A stretch of DNA of 64,000 nucleotides from Epithemia pelagica. Taxonomy: Eukaryota; Protista; Bacillariophyta. The notes under the pieces were generated by a model that saw only the letters and a list, made by a program, of their open reading frames with translations, did no database searches and was not told the origin of the DNA. A program made the position numbers and the translations under genes. The DNA lies in assembly GCA_946965045.2 (NCBI GenBank), contig OX337228.1, positions 62,001 through 126,000 of the forward strand, written 5' to 3'. Positions within the stretch are counted from its first letter, which is position 1, and each line of letters begins with the position of its first letter. Positions 1,696-51,983 of the stretch are shown here, piece after piece.

Positions 1696-3353
1696 CCAGG
1701 AGTGCATCACAACTACGTGAGGATGAGAGAGAGAGACGAAGAGTGTGTTTGCCAACCACAACCAACCACAACCAACCACACATCAATCCACAGACTGTAC
1801 TAATAGAGAGAGTGGGTTCGTCCAGAGAGAGATGGACGACACTTGAATGGACCACAACTACAACAAGAAACACCACAGAGGTCTTCTGTGCCTACGGTGA
1901 CTTGACCAACCAACAATCTCATTGTTTGATATGGAATGGCTCAAATGAACAACATTCGAGATAAAACAGGTTTAGGATGAGGATTACAAGAACCAGTTCC
2001 TCTAGAGTTTGAGCCACTGAAGGAGGGCGGAGATCAAGCATATGAATGTGGTGATCAGCAAATGGTCGACAGTTGGTGGACAGAGGAGCGACTGAAGCTC
2101 CTTGAGCGTGAAGCGTCTCTGGGGAAACTAGTGGACAAACTGTAAGAGGGCCAGAAACTTTTCATCGTGTTCTCATAACTGCCTTTGTGGTCGAGATGAT
2201 TCCAAAATCAGAACTCTCCAAATCGAAAGAAAAAATTGTCTACAACATCAGAAATCTCTTCGCAATGCACTCTCCTCTTTCTTTTCGAAAAAACTTGAGA
2301 TCTGTAGATGAATTTGGATGCCGGCTTAATGGCCCATTTCTGTAATTTGGTGCTGTGGACGAAATTCTCCGACCTCCAGTAACGAGAAGCGTCGAGTCGA
2401 ATCGAATCGAGATCATCCGCTCATACCTGCGAACCAAAAGGACACTTCCTCTTGTTGCGGTTGTGTTGTTGGCATCGCACACATACACACAGCTCTCACT
2501 CTCTCTCTCTCTTTTGCGCGATTTTGCATTGACACACCTCTGCTGCGACCTGTTCCAATCGGTCCTTGTGGCAATCACACACCATGAGCTCTTCTTCTTC
2601 ATTCTCATCCTCATGATCAAGGTAGTCGTCGTCTGCCCCTTTGTGGTCGTCGCCGTCAGTTTGGTCCTTTGCGGAACACCAACACAAACGTCTCATCCGT
2701 CGTCGACCCTATCATTTCAAGGCACTTTGCCAATCCGTGTTGTTGTTGACAGTCTTGGTGTCTTGGTGGGAACTAACACCTATCAACAGCTCCCGTCGTT
2801 GCCGATGGGAGGAGGAACTGCCAGAATAACCAGCACCAGCAAAACTACTACAACGACTGCTCGAGTGCCGCCAAAGGACTCAAACCCGACAATCAGTTTC
2901 CCCAGGCTAGCACCACCACAACCACAACGACCGTTTTTCGCATGGACGTCTTGGTCTCACGAAACACCACCATGTGAGGAATCGCACATGGAGCAACAAC
3001 TATCCTCATCATCCCCTGGCCGAACCACGACTCTCCAATGATGGAACTACCAATCCTGCTGATTCTTCACCTTCTTCGTTCTTTTCGACCGTTCGATGCT
3101 TGGAAACCTTGTTGGTATGGAAATTGACCAAAACGCCGGCCATGCTCATGCTGCTCTTTTATGCTGGTTTCTTGGCACAAGCCATTGTCTTGGAATTTTG
3201 CCCTCTGAAACCTGCACGGACAATTAAAGAAAGCGAGTGCAGCGTGGACTCTTACAAGGATACAGCAACGACACAGACTGAAGCGATCGTGTGTCTTCTC
3301 CGACCGACGGATGTGCCTTGAGCAAGCCACCGGAAGAGACCGACGGAGCATTC

Positions 3354-36994: not shown

Positions 36995-37849
36995 GAACTA
37001 TAGCATTAGAGTGTACCACCGACTCATAAATTTGGAGCAACCACAACAGCCACGCACAAATAGTGAACCATTGTTTTAGTAGTATGTTGGAAGGATTCTC
37101 GTACAAGAACCAACTCCGTAGGACGTAATCTCCTCACAACAATCTCATGGCTACTACGTGGGACAAAATCATACTCATGCCATCTCTCTGCTGGACGACA
37201 CGAACAAAGCACTCGAACGACACTCGATACCAAGAGAAACCGTCTTTTCATCCCAAAGCATGTGTGCCCATTTGTATATGCAGGGGGTTCCATCGTCTTT
37301 TGTGGAACCGTAGGAGTGTGTGTATGGGTGACGTTGTATACGACGACCGCTGATCCTCGGGGGGGATGTATTCTCCCCACACGTGCCTAGTTACTATAGC
37401 CCGAATTTTTACTGTACTCAAATTTTAGTTTTAGTGTATATAAGTAAAATTTTCGGTCGTGGGAAAAACCCAAAAAATGAGGCGAACGGAAACCGTCACA
37501 AAATGAGCCGAAACAGACCACGAAAAACAAACCGCGTGCAACAACAGCAACAACAACAGCAACAAGAACAACAATAGCAACAAGAACAAACAACAGCAGA
37601 GCCAGGACAAAGACAATGTAACAAAAAGGACATCACAACCAACCAGACCAAAGGATAAAGGCGAGACATGAAGACCAACCAAAGAGAGATACAAGGCGAG
37701 ACAAGTCGACAACCAAAGAAGGAAGGCAAGGCAGAGAAATGCAAAGACAAAGGCAAGACAAAGCAAAAACAACAGATAGCACCAGAAAAAACAGAAATCG
37801 AAGAGAGCCATTAAGAGACAACAATCAACAAGGAATAGGGAGGGTGAAT

Positions 37850-38110: not shown

Positions 38111-41100
38111 TCAGTAGTGACGACCCCCGTGGTTGAAATGGTAGTGATCACCGCCATGTCGGTGATAGCCACTGTGGTGGTTGCCTTGGTTAGGCCACGA
38201 AGAAGATGCAGGATACTGACGTGGAGGCGGTGGTGGCGAGGAATGATGGTGATAGTGATGGACCGTTGGGCCATTCACACGGGACGAAGGAATAGGAGGA
38301 GGTGGCGAATATGATCGAGGAGGGGGTGGCGGAGGGGAAGGCCCGCGGTAATGATCGTAACGGGGTCCATACGATGGTGGAGGTGGAGGAGGAGTCCACC
38401 CACCATGGTTACGATCGCTCGAATGGTAGGAGTACGATCGAGAATGAGGGGGAGGAGGAGGAGGCGACCGATTGTAGTGGTTGTCGCGTTGGTGGTAGTG
38501 ACTGCGACTCTCGTTGCGCTGGTAGTTGTGCTGGTAGTTGTCGTGTTGGTGATGAGAGTGTGTGGTGTTTGTTGTATTGTTGTTGTCCCATGCAGAAGGA
38601 GGAAGGAGCGGGGGTGGTTCGTCCTCGTCGTCTTTTTTCGCGGCTACTGGTGGAGATTTTTTCTTAGGTTCCTCTGAAACGAGAACAGTAGAGAGGTAAG
38701 AAACAGAAGTAGTAACAACATGCATTAGTCAGACAACAACGTACCTTTTTTGGTTTCTTCTTCGTCATCGGATGGCATGTACCAATGGGCCGTCACTGCC
38801 CTCTGTTTCGAGTGGTCCGTCACTTCTTGATACTCAAAGTTGATCTTTTCACCCTTGTGGCGGCCGTAATTCGTTGCAAGAGGTTGAGGAACGCCCGAGT
38901 TCGCAACCGTGGTGATCCCAGTTCTCCGAGCGGAACGACCAGTAAAGTTGCCGGTTCCTTCGAAACCACAACGCTTAGCCAACTCTTTCGTGTTGCGCGC
39001 AGCGAAATTTTCGCCCAACTTTCCACCAGGACGCATGCCAGTCAACGGATTAATCTTTGTTTTCGACATATCAGGAACAAGATCCGTCCAGGCACGGTGA
39101 GTCGATCCGTCAGTGCGTGTGGCAATTACTTTGGCGGGTGCTTCACGAAGGAAGAAGAGCCCTTTCCAACCCGGCGGGTGGGCAACTCTACGGTACTCCA
39201 TGACCAGTTTGTAGGTGCTCCATGGATCCTTGGGGTTTTCCACAATCATGTTCCCTTTGCAATCCACTGCGCGCCGGAACGAAGGGTTGGCAAGAGTCAA
39301 TTTTACATTCTTATGGTGACCGGAGTCAAGAGGGATGATCGCCGCCTTACCAGCGAGATCGCCGTGCGAATCATCTAGACTTTTAACAAATAGAAAGTCT
39401 GTTACTTTTGCTAAATGCATCTGAGTAGAAACAACAAGCAGAGGTGAGAAGCGTGTGATCCATACGACAATCCAACGGATCGTGGACGTACCTCTAGACA
39501 TCGAAAACTACAGTCACGGCAGACTTTGTAGAACACCATCATGAGGAGATCCTTGTAAATTTCAAACGGACGAAGTGGAGGACTCGCATACTTTCGCATG
39601 GACTTCTCGTCGTTGAGGCAAACTCCGGCTCGTTTGGGAAGTCGGCCAAACTCAGAACGGACGGTGGCGGTTTCCGACCACAAGTTCTCCAAGTAGGCAT
39701 GGTACGAGCCCTCCCCTTTGAGGTCCGACTGTGTGATCACGACTCCATTGGCTCGCAGGATGGAAAAGATGTGATTGAGCACTTTGCCGGTCGTGTTTGG
39801 CTGGTAGTGATACTTGGGGTCATGCGGGTCGTGCTCCCCCTTTTTGTACCCAGCCATCCGAAGATTCATGCAAAAAATCATACACAAACTGTTTAGCAAC
39901 CCCAATTTACCGCGTGTAATACCCCCCCGGAGAGCAACAAAAAGCTTGGGCACCTTCAAATTCTCGCCCTTTTCAGTATCAGGATCAATGATGGGCGCCG
40001 CGAGTCCTCTATAGTGTTTATGGCGACGGAGAATGTCTAAGAATCGTTTGAAAGAGTCCGCCTTGGCCTTGTTGTACGACTCCGAGTTCTGCGAGAGCTC
40101 GCGAACGTCGTACTTGTGGTTCTCGTCTTCGTACACATCCTCGCTGATGCGAGCAAAGGTGTTCCAGTACTGAATACTGTCCTTGGTGTGTGGCACATCC
40201 ACAGGGAGTTTTCGATACTCCGCAATCATCAGCTCGCCATCCTCATTTTCGGTCACATGTCTCTGCTTGACGCATGCCATGGCAATGGTTCGTGTATCGA
40301 GTGGAGAAGGGGGACCAATGGCAGCAGGAGGATGATGTTCGTCCAGTGGTTCCTCGTCGTCCGTATCTTCCAACAGGTGATACCAATCGTCTTCATCTTC
40401 ATCGTCATCGTCCCTGAAAGAAAGAACGACATTCGTGTGAGACACAACAATCATACAAAAGAAGGGAGTATCTCATCCTCAACTTACTCCGGAAGATAAG
40501 GAACAAGAGGAGGAAGACGATCGTCTTCTTCGTCGTCATCTTCCTCGTCGAAAAGGGAAGGACGATCCTTCTTCCCATTGGTGCTGAAAAAGAGGAGGCC
40601 ATTCTTGTCAGACACAACAATCATACAGAAAAGAAGACGGCAATGATGATCCAACAACTTACCTTTCTTTCGGGTGAGGATGGTGACGAGGAGGAGGAGG
40701 AACGTTTTCCTTCCCATTGTCGACGGTGGGAGGAGGAAGTTTCTTCTTCGGATGAACCTTCTTTGTTACCTTCCGAACAAGAGGGCGAGGAATGTCGTCT
40801 TCCTCTTCATCGCGGTACCTCTTCTTGGCTGCTGCAGCAGCAGCTTGGCGTTTAGATCGACGGGGGCGGAGCGGAGTCTTGGCCATGGTCTTTCGTTTCC
40901 TGCAATGCGATGCAAAAATGGCAATGGAAGAAAAAGTGTGAGGTTTGTTTTGCACGGTAAACACAGCAACGAATTCAAAAATGGATGAGGCGGGGCACGC
41001 GCGCAGGAAGAAAAAGGAAGGAAGGAAGAGTCGCAGGAAGGAAGACTGGTCGACAATGACAAAAAACAACAATCAAACTTACATTTTCTCCAACTTGGCA

Positions 41101-41372
41101 AGGTACCAAGGATCGGAATGAACACTGTGAGCGTCGGTGTCGCTCCCAGTGCATTCATCCATCTTTGGAACGAAGGTACCGTCCAAAGGTACGAAGGCGA
41201 GTGAGATGGCGTCCGACGAGGATGAACACAACGATAAAGACGACGAAGACGATGAACACGACGACAAAGACGACGAAGAAGACGCAATGGAGATAGGAGA
41301 AGACACAATGCCACGATGTCCCTTGTCCTTGGAAGGCATGGGGCTGACAACGGCCGTAGGAGGTTTCGTCAT
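38111..41372 (-). CDS. Tyrosine recombinase (Crypton-type), 927 aa, 6 exons (41372-41083, 40899-40663, 40583-40488, 40413-39492, 39420-38745, 38673-38111)
   Basis: YQPNTTGKVLNHIFSIL core-binding-like helix; SFRCLE (Arg I); HHKN; FTGRSARRTGITTVANSGVP; GRHK; FEYQ (Tyr). All five introns are GT-AG, and the exons sum to 2784 nt with no internal stop. The exon 1 start codon is less certain. Confidence 0.85.
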
Positions 41373-41624
41373 GGTCAGGTCTTCCTTTTTCCAAACGAAT
41401 GATGAAACACAACGCCCAACACACAAATGCGGCCACTTTATCTGCTTGGAAACTCGTAGCTCCTAAGTAACCTCCAAGTATATTTGTGAGTCCTAATTAG
41501 ATTGTTCCTAATTGTCGTAAGTAATCTTTCTTTACAATGGTACTGTTTTCCTATGTATTCCAAACAATTAGAAAACTCAACGTACTTTATTACATCCCCC
41601 CCTCGGACGCAACGGACGCCTATG

Positions 41625-41821
41625 ACATTTGCTGCTCGGAACGCTTCTCGTCGGGGGCACTCGTCGGGGCGTAACTCCTCGAAGGGCAATAGGTCCTCGT
41701 CGTGGACTGCCCCTATATCCGCTGACGCGGGGGGCAGTCCACTCCTCGGACCTATTGCCCTTCTCGTCGTTACGCCCCTCCTCGTGCCTCCCTCCTCGAA
41801 GCTACTCCTCGCAGCAAATGT
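41625..41821 (-). other. Rod-like hairpin with nine tandem G.A/A.G mismatches (structured ssDNA or RNA element, unknown class)
   Basis: Watson-Crick helices catttgctgc, gcttc, ggcac, ggggcgtaac, gaagggcaataggtcc and gtggactgcccc are separated by tc/tc on the + strand (GA/GA on the - strand). Apical loop ccgc-GTCA-gcgg on the - strand. Confidence 0.9.
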
Positions 41822-43465
41822 AATATTACAACAACAAGAAGGCCGGGGGACGATCCCTGGTTCCGTTTCCTACACACGCTTGACCTTGGCCTCCGACCGG
41901 GGGTGGTTGTTGTTGGTGTTGTTTTGCTGTGGTGGTTGGGAACCAGAAGACGAACGACCCCGACAACGAAACGTTTGCCACACCACCAGACCCAACCAAA
42001 GGAGGGCTGTTCCATATTTGCCGGCATTGGCCACTACAATCACAGTCCAAGAATACCACCACGAGTCGTCACTTTGTATGGTTCTCGGTTGTTCAAGAGC
42101 CCGTCGACAGGCGAATTGCAACAGAGAAGTTTCCGCCACGTCGCAAATCCACGTCGTACACACCGGCCCCCACACACGCCAGTGCCGGAGACACGTGCCA
42201 CAAGGAGGAGGAACCACGAGTGTTTGTCGTCGTCCAGGATTCTTGCTCCCAACTCCCATACACGAGACTGCTGAGCGCCACAATGTAACAGGGCATGTAC
42301 CACGCCAAGTCAATATACGAAAAGTCAATGTACTGACGTTGTTTGGTGGCGGTCCACGCTTCCACAATCCATTCGGACAATAAGGCCTCACTACTACTAC
42401 GGGTCGTCGTACCATTGTTGCCGCGCAAAAAACACAACAAGACCATGTCGGGGAGCCACACGCCTCGCGTCACAGCATACATGGCAAGATTGCCACACGC
42501 GGTCAAGACCGCCAAGAGAGTCAAGGATCGCTTCAAGTGATGCGCACCCCATTCACACAGCGCACTGTACTGACAAGCCAACCAATAAACCCGCTTCCCA
42601 AACCCTGCCATTGTGGCTCCTGGTGCTGCCATGTCTGGACGAAAGGTATCGACGACGATAACAAGTGTCAAACCCAAAGGATTCTTGGTTCCTCAAAGAG
42701 ACACTTTTGGTCTTCATGGAGGCCTCACCCGAGTCGTGAAGCGAACTCCCAAAGATACCAATTTCATCCGCGTTTAGGTCGCTCTTTACAGTACTTGTCG
42801 ATGGATTCCCGATCTGTGACTGCAGTCCCATGAGGAGATTCATGGATTCCCGATCAGATGGGTCGTGGTTCGGTAGCCTCTGTAGTGTTCGCATCCTTCG
42901 GAAACAGGAACGAATTCCAGATGCAGATCTTTTGGGTGCCACGACGCCATGTGTCTCGCGTGGATTCCTCCCCTCACTGCAAAAGCAATTCGTCGACCGA
43001 AAGAAAAAGAGAGAAGACTGAGAAGATACCTGTCTCTTCCATTGATCTTCTTGTGTGCGGGTTGTAGGAGTATTATCCACCACGATACTATACTGGCATT
43101 GAATACGATCTCGATACACAGCAAGTCCAAACACGTGTGTGATTTGGGAAACAGTGTTGTGTGTGGGCAAGTGCAAAAAGTGATCACACCAAGCAACATC
43201 TTGGTAGCAACAGCATCAGCAGTAGAGGCCGTTGGAAGAATTGTCGATTGAACCAAACGCATCTTCCTGCCTGCCTTGCGTCATTTTCGGGGGACCAAGA
43301 GTGACACACGACTCTTGGCTGTGTGACATCGGGCCGCCAAACCAGGAATATATCAGTGAGTATAGAAACAGGAAACGAAGGATGAAACCGTGTGGAGGGA
43401 ATCCTACCCAACAACCACTGCGGCGTGATGGTGCTTTATCTTCATCATCCTTTCATGAATGGCGA

Positions 43466-50403: not shown

Positions 50404-51983
50404 GTGAAAGTCCCTCGTTTCACTCCTCTCAGGGGAGTGAGATCTCTGTGCAGGATTCGTCCAATTCGTACCAACTACCAAAACTAGTAGAGGAGGAAGC
50501 TATGAGATTATGAGATACCTTCCTAAGTTCCTGCTCTTTTGTTCGATAGAGCTATGGAATATATAATGGGTATGTCATAATATGTCAAATGTCAAGTGTC
50601 AAACCCACTCTTCGTGTTTGGATTTTGGATCTTGGATTTTTGATTGCCCACGCTGTATGCTGTATGGTGTATGGTCCATCCGATATCCGATGGTGGGAGT
50701 GGTGAGGTTTCGATGGTGACAAACGCGAACTTTTCTTCTCAGGTCGGTTTGCACTTGAATCTAGAATCTACCGGCTCATGGAAACCAGAAATTTGGACAA
50801 TCACTCAGCATCCGAAAAAATAGATTCAATGAGAAGTCAGAAGTCAGAAAAATAATAAGAAATAATAGCGGGTCGAAAGGAGAGTGGTCTCCCTTCCAAT
50901 CCTTTCCTTCCTTCCTTTCACCTGTCTCAACAGGAGACAGGAGACAGGAGGTATTTCAAGTTTCGAGTTTCTACTCCATCTCGAAGTGCACTCATGTCTC
51001 ATGTTGTCATGATGTGTCATGTGACAGTGAGTGTTTGCGAATCCGAATCCACACCCGACACAGCTACTTCTTCTTGGTCGACTTTAGTTCATGCTTTGGG
51101 GAGAGGAGTGCCGCATGGAAAAGGTTGACATGAGCATTGTTCTCGTTGGTGCAATCTCACATGTAGGCATTTGAGATTGGAAAAGGGTCGCTGGATGAAT
51201 CGGACAACCACATTATCTCATGATACATTCATTGTGTGCGTTTTTCTAGATAGAAACCCGTTGCTTTCTTTCTAGGAAGACGGCTCGTGTTCCGGAATCC
51301 TTTTCGAGCGAATCTCTAGGTAGAAGAGAGGGGAAAACTAGAATATAGTCTATGGAGGAAATGGTGACGACGAGATAATGGCCTTTCGTACGATCGACGA
51401 TACCCAGATACTCCTAGAATCTATGCCGGCACGTGCTATCTCCTAAGATCTGAAAGTCTGAGCACATGCAGTCATAGACTCAGTCGAATACTATGCCCTA
51501 AATCGCCAGGTTCCCGGGAGCACGCCGGTATGAGTAGCAAAAAAATCCTAACTTTTTACCGAGCTTTCACGTGTCCATGGCGCATGCTGGCAACATCTGT
51601 ATAGTATAGCTACGCAATTATAGCGTACATATAAGCGCGCTCGCGTACTCGGAACGACACTAGGCACATGCTTTTGTGCGCATAGGGAACATAGAAACAC
51701 ACGTGCACCAACGACTTGCCCTCACAATATTTTTGTTGAGCCATGGTTCTCAAAGATTCTTTGAGAACCATGGCTCAACAAAAATACCCACGATCGAGAA
51801 GAAGAGAACTAAACCACACAGCGCCAAACTATAAAGTCGGACGCAGACGCACACTCGAGAGAGAGAGAGATACTAGAGTGGCCTCCTCAGCTGAAAGTCT
51901 GAAACAATTGGACATCTTCTTTTTCTTGTGTGTGCTGGAGTCGACGAAACGAACGACAGCGACTTCACCGTTTTTCGAGACGA

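Follow-up and report, generated by a model that had tools for sequence, protein, structure and literature searches.

A strand-specific fold with tandem G·A modules at the 5′ end of a Crypton-like tyrosine-recombinase element of Epithemia pelagica, a candidate folded-DNA recombination site

Introduction

We examined 64,000 nucleotides (nt) of the genome of the diatom Epithemia pelagica (assembly GCA_946965045.2, contig OX337228.1, positions 62,001 to 126,000 of the forward strand), a stretch referred to here as the window and in whose numbering all coordinates below are given. Its minus strand harbors a Crypton-like transposon of about 4489 bp, delimited by its copies and by blastn, which runs from a 5′ core at 41832 to a 3′ core at 37343 and encodes a predicted tyrosine recombinase. 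The 5′-terminal structure of this transposon is a 197-nt hairpin, hereafter the rod, which lies inside the element, 7 to 11 nt from its 5′ end (41625-41821, minus strand). The original prediction, made from the letters of the window alone, had placed the rod next to the recombinase element; the association was correct, but the rod is the element's own terminal structure and not a neighbor of it.

The rod and the boundaries of the element

The minus strand of positions 41625-41821 folds as one rod with a minimum free energy of -72.9 kcal/mol (DNA parameters), compared with -29.0 +/- 3.3 kcal/mol for 200 shuffles that preserve the dinucleotide composition, none of which was as stable (z = -13.5). 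The fold drawn in the original prediction was reproduced exactly. The rod is made of helices of 11, 3, 5, 3+5, 10, 16 and 12 bp, between which are found one lone GA/GA and four GA-N-GA/GA-N-GA modules with a central G-C or C-G pair. It also contains two 1-nt bulges and a 5-nt ATATA bulge (41714-41718) beside the apical stem-loop CCGC-GTCA-GCGG (41719-41730), the two together occupying 41714-41730 of the minus strand according to the fold and the family alignment. When the arms of the rod are aligned, all internal mismatches are TC/TC on the plus strand, that is GA/GA on the minus strand, save for one tandem G·T wobble. The wobble accounts for two of the 20 mismatched positions, and the minus strand has G·A or A·G at the other 18. 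The GA units facing each other, the four GA-N-GA modules, the GT/GT wobble and the three bulges had all been described beforehand, and all were seen in the arm alignment. If the 12 ordered mismatch types are assumed to be equiprobable, 18 G·A positions would arise with a chance of about (1/6)^18. The motif CTCSTCG is present nine times on the plus strand of the rod and its complement is absent from it. The rod fold and its G·A mismatch pattern are real and far beyond chance. The plus strand gives the same fold at -68.3 kcal/mol. A CCGAGG hexamer (41744-41749), previously thought to be shared with the core of the element, is merely another C-GA-G module.

The relatives fetched with their DNA all come from one ENA assembly (ERZ21939226), and six families were compared, namely L001/L010, L002, L003/L006/L007, L004, L008 and the window. 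The blastn homology of the window with L001, L002 and L003 spans 41833 to about 37341. The exact ends were fixed by L003, L006 and L007, which share 99% identity over 4994 bp and whose flanks are unrelated; they begin with GTAGT-AGTTCTAC-rod and finish with ...CCAATGGTAG(T). The other families align to these ends, and the 3′ end of the window's family was set by a 96.7% identical copy (L009:5768-10139), the resulting boundaries being accurate to +/-4 nt. Every family opens with GTNGT-ARTWYTAC and closes with ...GGTNG(T), so that 5-bp GTNGT direct repeats bound the element at both ends in all families, in which its size ranges from 4.0 to 5.4 kb.

Since copies with unrelated flanks fix the ends outside the rod, the rod is inside the element. 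Following the minus strand of the window from the 5′ end, the terminal core GTTGT (ACAAC on the plus strand; 41828-41832), one of the two GTNGT repeats, was placed by the family alignment and includes position 41829, where a read joint described below falls. Then come the 6-nt spacer AATATT between core and rod (41822-41827), which is unpaired in the consensus fold, the rod itself, and a post-rod segment, CATAGGCGT-CCGTTG-C-GTCC-GA-GGGGGGGATGTA (41591-41624), whose last 25 nt pair with the 3′ end of the element and which contains a GCG that pairs with the crossover core. At the opposite end, also on the minus strand, a 3′-terminal pairing segment, TACATCCCCCCC-GA-GGAT-CAGCGG (37348-37371), is complementary to 41591-41615 save for G·T wobbles and a GA/GA mismatch, and is followed by the 3′ terminal core GTCGT (ACGAC on the plus strand; 37343-37347), the third base of which covaries with the base that it faces. 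Two earlier placements have to be corrected in light of these ends. The gap between the rod and the element end, given as 18 bp, is 7-11 nt with the 5′ core at 41832-41828, and positions 41591-41606, taken in a companion claim for an end of the element, are an internal site that pairs with the true 3′ end at 37348-37371.

The six families, as well as the 99% identical copies with differing flanks, all have the rod on the same strand and at a distance of 7-11 nt from the 5′ end. We rejected an independent fold-back insertion, or miniature inverted-repeat transposable element (MITE), with ends of its own, since the rod always keeps this position and strand within the recombinase element. A coding role was rejected as well, since no open reading frame (ORF) through the rod is common to the copies.

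The recombinase gene

The recombinase gene has several exons and extends approximately from 38725 to 41372 on the minus strand, as judged from ORFs, homology and the predicted fold. Its conserved first exon, with an ATG near 41372, begins about 250 nt downstream of the rod, in agreement with the predicted distance and with the placement of the rod on the sense strand of the gene. Further along the minus strand are a basic exon (40665-41072), ORF A (39411-40454), which carries the core-binding domain and the catalytic Arg in FRCLEV, and ORF B (38725-39501), which overlaps ORF A and carries RxxR...H...Y. In alignments, FRxxEV closes ORF A and is followed by an intron, the invariant EV corresponding to a GAG|GT donor, and GTAAGT donor sites are present on the minus strand of the gene. 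The motifs GRxARRTG and GRHK were found in ORF B, along with a Tyr 9 residues past the His, a spacing like that of W315-Y324 in Cre.

ORF A has 156 relatives in a representative library, and the ORF A proteins of the rod-bearing families are about 35-65% identical to that of the window; ORF B has only three non-self relatives among 5.8 billion proteins. One relative, P0160, has an uninterrupted frame of 580 amino acids, and its AlphaFold model has a predicted local distance difference test score (pLDDT) of 72. Nearly all of the 30 best Foldseek matches of this model are tyrosine recombinases or topoisomerase IB. With VIA-align, the model matched Cre with a Z of 12.9 over 290 of 316 residues, followed by Xer, XerH, the IntI-attC complex (2a3v, Z 9.6), Tn1549 Int, lambda Int, Flp and topoisomerase IB. 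The Atlas neighbors of the recombinase fall in Phage_integrase, DUF3504, ALOG and NDC10 clusters, the eukaryotic Crypton kin group. Pfam scans, which covered ORFs of at least 80 amino acids, gave no family match for the ORFs of the element or its relatives, and no reverse transcriptase, RNase H, DDE or HUH domain in the element and eight relatives; a PDB sequence search with P0160 returned chance matches only. Judged by its predicted fold and its motifs, the gene product is a tyrosine recombinase, though it belongs to no sequence family. A DIRS-like retroelement was rejected, as the element has no reverse transcriptase or RNase H domain and a size of only 4.0-5.4 kb.

Rods in related elements

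Rods were sought in the relatives by energy scans and by module scans. In all complete relatives (L001, L010, L002, L003, L006, L007, L004 and L008), a homologous rod precedes the recombinase ORFs by 1.2-2 kb on the sense strand of the gene, and the suspected association of rod copies with tyrosine-recombinase elements thus holds for each of them. In the six families, 9 to 17 CGASGAG-type modules were counted on the sense strand versus 0 or 1 on the antisense strand. Clusters of at least six modules are confined to rods in about 215 kb searched on both strands, along with one 6-module cluster that partly overlaps the L008 rod.

We built one joint construct per family (n = 6), in which the 3′ end of the element is joined to its 5′ end at the core. 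The consensus of the six constructs comprises 88 pairs with 90.2% of cells paired, and 29 of these pairs show compensatory changes. When the partner columns were slid by 1-3 positions, paired cells dropped to 36-44% and compensatory pairs to 6-13; the family counts share ancestry and are not independent events, a relatedness that the slid control retains. For the contiguous part of the alignment, RNAalifold gave 66 pairs, 25 of them with double (compensatory) changes. Covariation, which had been put forward as a sign of function, is therefore present in the true register and fails in the slid one.

The oppositions counted on the sense strand of the six families are 140 G·A or A·G, 18 A·A, 8 G·G, 15 T·T, 11 T·C or C·T, 18 G·T and 6 A·C. 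Purine·purine mismatches outnumber pyrimidine·pyrimidine mismatches by about 6:1, whereas a strand-symmetric process would predict equality. The central pair of the modules switches between G-C and C-G from one family to another, and the GA/GA unit is sometimes swapped for a Watson-Crick TC/GA. The apical 75 nt or so (GGGCAATAG...GAGGAGTGKACTGCCC and its partner, with the CCGC/GCGG stem) are near-invariant in sequence; the CCGC/GCGG stem is kept in all families and is capped by GTCA, GTAA or TATAA loops. The strand polarity noted in the original prediction was recovered with RNA parameters, which reward tandem GA and under which the sense strand of the rods is 21-41 kcal/mol more stable than the antisense strand. 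With DNA parameters, under which the mismatches of both strands are generic loops, the gap is 4-9 kcal/mol.

The comparison of sequences supports the proposal, first made from the window, that selection maintains the rod as a strand-specific structure: six diverged families have kept it, with compensatory changes, and in each it lies on the sense strand of the recombinase. It is very hard to believe that the rod has no function and is a decaying palindrome, or an unrelated MITE-like fold-back insertion that came to lie beside the gene by chance. The window does contain other long hairpins, such as that at 895-1078, but the same position, strand and grammar are found in six families with proteins 35-65% identical, and the 29 compensatory pairs would not be expected of such an insertion. 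As had been argued beforehand, decay would not give this pattern: each change from GA to TC takes two transversions, a mismatch spectrum that point mutation could not reach, and the rods are conserved with compensatory pairs. Moreover, relics lacking half of the rod show decayed modules.

Folding across the joined ends

The last 24-30 nt or so of the element are complementary to a stretch of approximately 30 nt immediately downstream of the rod, in a helix that includes G·T wobbles and GA/GA oppositions. In L002 this pairing joins GTTGCCTAGGTA with TACCTAGGCAAC, and in L004 and L008 it joins GTCGTGCC or GTCCTGCC with GGCACGAC or GGTAGGAC and includes a full GA-N-GA module. The end-to-end helix is thus made of three unrelated sequences, and the pairing is kept in all of them. 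At the predicted circle joint, the 3′ end would meet the 5′ end as ...CAGCGGTCG|TAATATTAC..., and because the 3′ end of the element pairs with the post-rod segment, the rod would continue across this joint with the core inside the fold. Indeed, the joint constructs fold as one long rod in 6/6 families. The joined ends can form a continuous helix of about 290 nt on one strand, the sense strand of the recombinase, that is interrupted nearly only by tandem G·A/A·G. In the joint fold, the crossover core GTNG|T lies in a short helix of 3 bp that separates the end-to-end helix from the rod, and there G-T-N-G|T opposes 5′-GCKTC-3′ through the pairs G-C, T·T, N-N′, G-C and T·G. The third base of the core covaries with the base facing it, the pair being C:G in the window, against A:T in each of the remaining five families.

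Four roles had been envisaged for the rod in the original prediction. A targeting landmark is ruled out, since the rod travels in the mobile unit and is found with different flanks. A folded-strand recombination substrate appears to fit best, because the core would lie inside the fold across the circle joint; the protein-binding array and the structured non-coding RNA are weighed below. We tentatively propose that the rod and the joined ends constitute a strand-specific folded-DNA recombination site, which would work like attC or the CTX attP without being a member of either class, and we assign to this reading a probability of roughly 0.45. Folded DNA seems preferable to RNA because the 3′ end pairs beside the core, which would link the structure to the joining of ends rather than to expression.

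The same pairing might be explained with duplex DNA or an extruded cruciform as the site, although we find this unlikely. The rod and the inverted end segments would then make up a protein-binding array in which the one-way CGASGAG motifs give direction and the palindrome gives the recombinase, or accessory proteins, symmetrical binding places comparable to the arm sites of phage attP. Such an array would account for the conservation in sequence, beyond pairing, of the apical 75 nt or so, and the complementarity of the ends resembles terminal inverted repeats under joint evolution with a single protein that binds them. The usual substrates of tyrosine recombinases are duplex sites and Holliday junctions, and a cruciform is similar to the latter. 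However, a duplex array gives no reason for palindromic spacers kept by compensatory changes, for purine·purine mismatches on one strand or for the excess of G·T over A·C, and in a duplex the inverted end segments would be about 225 bp apart.

Sequencing reads, relics and database searches

In the genome-like runs X2 and X3, the read depth is 60-100 over the flanks, 350-440 over the element and 1144-1517 over the rod, which fits several copies of the window's family together with rod words common to the families. Run X1, obtained from the same sample as X2 and X3, has a very uneven depth, from 4.6 to 13,650, which suggests RNA, and it yielded a mismatch-free contig over 41511-41691 at a depth like that of the element body. 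This contig bears on the suggestion that the rod is transcribed, be it through read-through, in antisense or from a promoter active across the joint of the circle, and that it acts as a structured RNA controlling the element, either as a translational or stability element or as a small-RNA hairpin precursor. We consider such an RNA improbable. Tandem G·A and G·U wobbles are typical of RNA helices, the gap between sense and antisense strands is largest with RNA parameters, and the rod matched in Rfam, on both strands, the long-hairpin microRNA precursor MIR1858. However, this match is generic long-hairpin likeness, with a sub-threshold score of 47.9 bits against a gathering threshold of 137. 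Because only 7-11 nt precede the rod and the first exon lies about 250 nt downstream of it, the promoter of the element cannot give a sense transcript of the rod in an integrated copy, which makes a sense non-coding RNA driven from an internal promoter unlikely. Furthermore, an RNA role would leave unexplained the pairing of the rod's neighbor with the extreme 3′ end beside the core.

Run X1 also contains two low-depth joints with short sides, 40858->41111 and 40522->41111, the latter bounded by GT..AG on the plus strand, in antisense to the recombinase. They may represent a spliced antisense transcript toward the rod or an artefact of paralogous copies. Another joint, 37048->41829, was found in X1, X2 and X3 at flank-like depth and skips 4780 bp, that is the element plus 295 bp past its 3′ end. 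Its right side is in the 5′ core ACAAC (41828-41832) and its left side is at an ACAACA (37043-37048), the other ACAACA being at 41828-41833. This joint may correspond to an element-less haplotype or to a recombinase-mediated deletion to a secondary core.

Two relics are broken within the rod. The L009 copy, situated within a tandem repeat of the host, has a 12-nt deletion after a rod that is broken off at the equivalent of 41691; a loose end of the reads at 41691 is exactly the junction of L009. ERZ21939226 and the public runs containing the window represent the same organism. The other relic (L005:325-431, minus strand) is a lone 5′ arm of an L008-type rod with 92% identity, cut exactly at the apex and with decayed modules (CGATGAG, TGATGAG). 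The recombinase relative of L005 itself (38% identity) has no rod, and the half rod at the edge of L005 is that of another, broken copy. In run X4, a biofilm metagenome, a 161-nt contig with 3 differences covers 41436-41596, immediately internal to the rod, which places this organism, or one closely related to it, in the habitat sampled.

A protein-pattern scan of metagenome contigs gave 435 pattern matches, of which none was confirmed. The DNA pattern of the apical rod had no match in viral contigs or in metagenome contigs, and blastn of the rod against phage records found none either. Downstream of the gene of a distant recombinase relative from other samples (L011:3250-3607), we observed an array of GGGAAATACT-like motifs forming local hairpins without G·A modules, which may be a different kind of end structure.

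Other palindromes were also observed. A 184-nt near-perfect hairpin occupies 895-1078 of the window, right after a run of 21 G, with a DNA fold of -79.6 kcal/mol (z = -17), few mismatches and no G·A pattern; it may be a fold-back element. Kinship with the rod system was rejected for this hairpin, the neighboring ORFs (1122-1964 and 2355-3041) being unrelated to the recombinase. A perfect palindrome with arms of 29 nt and a centre of 1 nt (TATTTTTGTTGAGCCATGGTTCTCAAAGA and its complement) lies at 51728-51786. In L006 (2600-2920), an array of ATATCGGGCTAGCCCGATC palindromic units, with a fold of -74 kcal/mol, lies beside DDE_Tnp_4 and Plant_tran genes and is unrelated to the rod.

Proposed mechanism and its significance

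If the joined ends do form a folded-DNA recombination site, a circular intermediate, as assumed for Cryptons, would join the two ends, and the sense strand, either single-stranded or extruded from a supercoiled circle, would fold and bring them together. Within the fold, the recombinase would meet the core in surroundings that resemble a duplex. Owing to the stability of the C-GA-S-GA-G modules, the sense strand would be favored over its complement, which has T·C/C·T at the same positions. The sequence-conserved apical 75 nt or so could be the part that is recognized, and the covarying basal stems would need only to pair. Each module has a local two-fold symmetry in the fold and could seat a protein dimer.

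A bolder version of this proposal is that a eukaryotic tyrosine-recombinase transposon is excised, integrated or both as a folded single strand, with its ends joined by a purine-zippered helix that holds the cut site and with the C-GA-S-GA-G array as a strand-selection device. We hold it as a doubtful conjecture. The conserved rod suggests that cutting and joining of the element take place on a folded single strand, which is not described for eukaryotic transposons of this class. Passage through a single-stranded circle would also agree with a second-strand origin, in which the rod recruits a polymerase or a primase for synthesis of the complementary strand, in the manner of the single-strand origin (sso) of a rolling-circle plasmid or the minus origin of a filamentous phage. 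The size of about 200 nt, the imperfect palindrome, the strand specificity and the fixed orientation match an sso, and the evidence of strand bias applies equally to it. We think this origin slightly less probable still than a structured RNA, as it leaves unexplained the fold across the joint with the core inside, and no single-stranded circle was seen and no Rep or HUH protein was found in the ORFs scanned.

Several observations weigh against a folded-DNA recombination site. The sole element-less joint is not precise, its left side being 295 bp outside the 3′ end, and neither a circle joint, a single-stranded form nor a precise empty site was seen in the read contigs, which drop rare forms. 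All rods come from one genome and assembly, none having been found outside it in the metagenome and viral scans, and P0011, a relative with 37% identity from other samples, has no modules in the approximately 1.2 kb of upstream sequence held by its contigs. Inspection by eye revealed no inverted recombinase-binding arms beside the core. The covariation of the end-to-end helix could stem from the logic of terminal inverted repeats, with one protein binding both ends. The bias of G·T over A·C (18 vs 6) comes from small and non-independent counts, and the sheared G·A geometry of the modules and their stability are presumed from known cases.

To our knowledge, no other class of eukaryotic DNA transposons is as poorly understood as the Cryptons, with ends considered featureless and no mechanism shown. 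A conserved, strand-specific fold holding the core provides a concrete and testable model of how such an element finds and joins its ends. Should the element indeed act in single-stranded form, a mechanism so far known in bacteria alone (integron cassettes, the CTX phage and IS608) would extend to eukaryotes, and this would be the first eukaryotic counterpart of single-strand recombination in the style of attC, CTX or IS608. In addition, the C-GA-S-GA-G array lends itself, as a clean natural system, to the study of tandem G·A pairs within long helices, and provides a sequence signature for locating such elements and their ends in diatom genomes.

Comparison with known systems

Tandem sheared G·A motifs, in which a 5′-GA-3′ faces another 5′-GA-3′ and is closed by C-G or G-C pairs, are unusually stable in DNA and RNA. 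The local unit of the rod is identical to those known from CGAG-type contexts, from centromeric GGA or TGGAA repeats and from (CGA)n. However, the known cases are short model duplexes or satellites, whereas here a spaced GA-N-GA array is found in a long covarying hairpin of a mobile element.

The attC sites of integrons are imperfect palindromes used as folded single strands by a tyrosine recombinase; their structure counts more than their sequence, non-Watson-Crick features set the strand, and the crossover is inside the fold. Similarly, the rod is an imperfect palindrome, it is strand-marked and the core is in the predicted fold; its basal stems and the end-to-end helix covary, but its apical part of about 75 nt is conserved in sequence. 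On the other hand, attC sites are bacterial, 57-141 nt long and marked by extrahelical bases, whereas the rod has tandem G·A modules and a length of 197 nt (about 290 across the joint), and its use as a single strand is proposed here on the indirect evidence of the strand bias. In the forked hairpin of the CTX-phage attP(+), used by XerCD, two inverted segments of one strand likewise build a strand-specific site, but this site is about 150 nt long, has a central unpaired fork instead of G·A modules, and is used by host recombinases on a bacterial filamentous phage. The elements of the IS200/IS605 and Helitron/Replitron groups share with ours the presence of strand-specific hairpins near their ends, which guide one-strand cleavage and circle formation (PMC10288648); they rely on HUH endonucleases and hairpins of about 20-40 nt, in contrast to a Cre-fold recombinase and a structure of about 200 nt.

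In overall organization the element is Crypton-like, and among Cryptons the CryptonS group is known from oomycetes and diatoms (Kojima & Jurka 2011, PMC3212892). Cryptons are stated there to lack inverted repeats, and the words hairpin and palindrome are absent from that paper; a 2025 survey also describes them as having no conserved structural features (PMC12130899). Our full-text literature search found nothing relevant on hairpin or single-stranded Crypton ends or on tandem G·A hairpins in transposons. The element described here resembles Cryptons in its tyrosine-recombinase fold, in having no reverse transcriptase or other transposase in the ORFs scanned, in its stramenopile host and in its intron-bearing gene. 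It also has 5-bp terminal direct repeats, taken as the crossover sequence, and no long terminal repeats, an arrangement described for Cryptons (PMC3212892). It differs from them in its core, which is GTNGT instead of TATGG, and in its protein, which matches no Pfam family. Above all, one of its ends is a hairpin of about 200 nt interrupted by G·A pairs and the other end pairs beside it, the 24-30-nt inverted pairing between the 3′ end and the subterminal 5′ segment, together with the rod, being excluded by the description of the family (PMC3212892).

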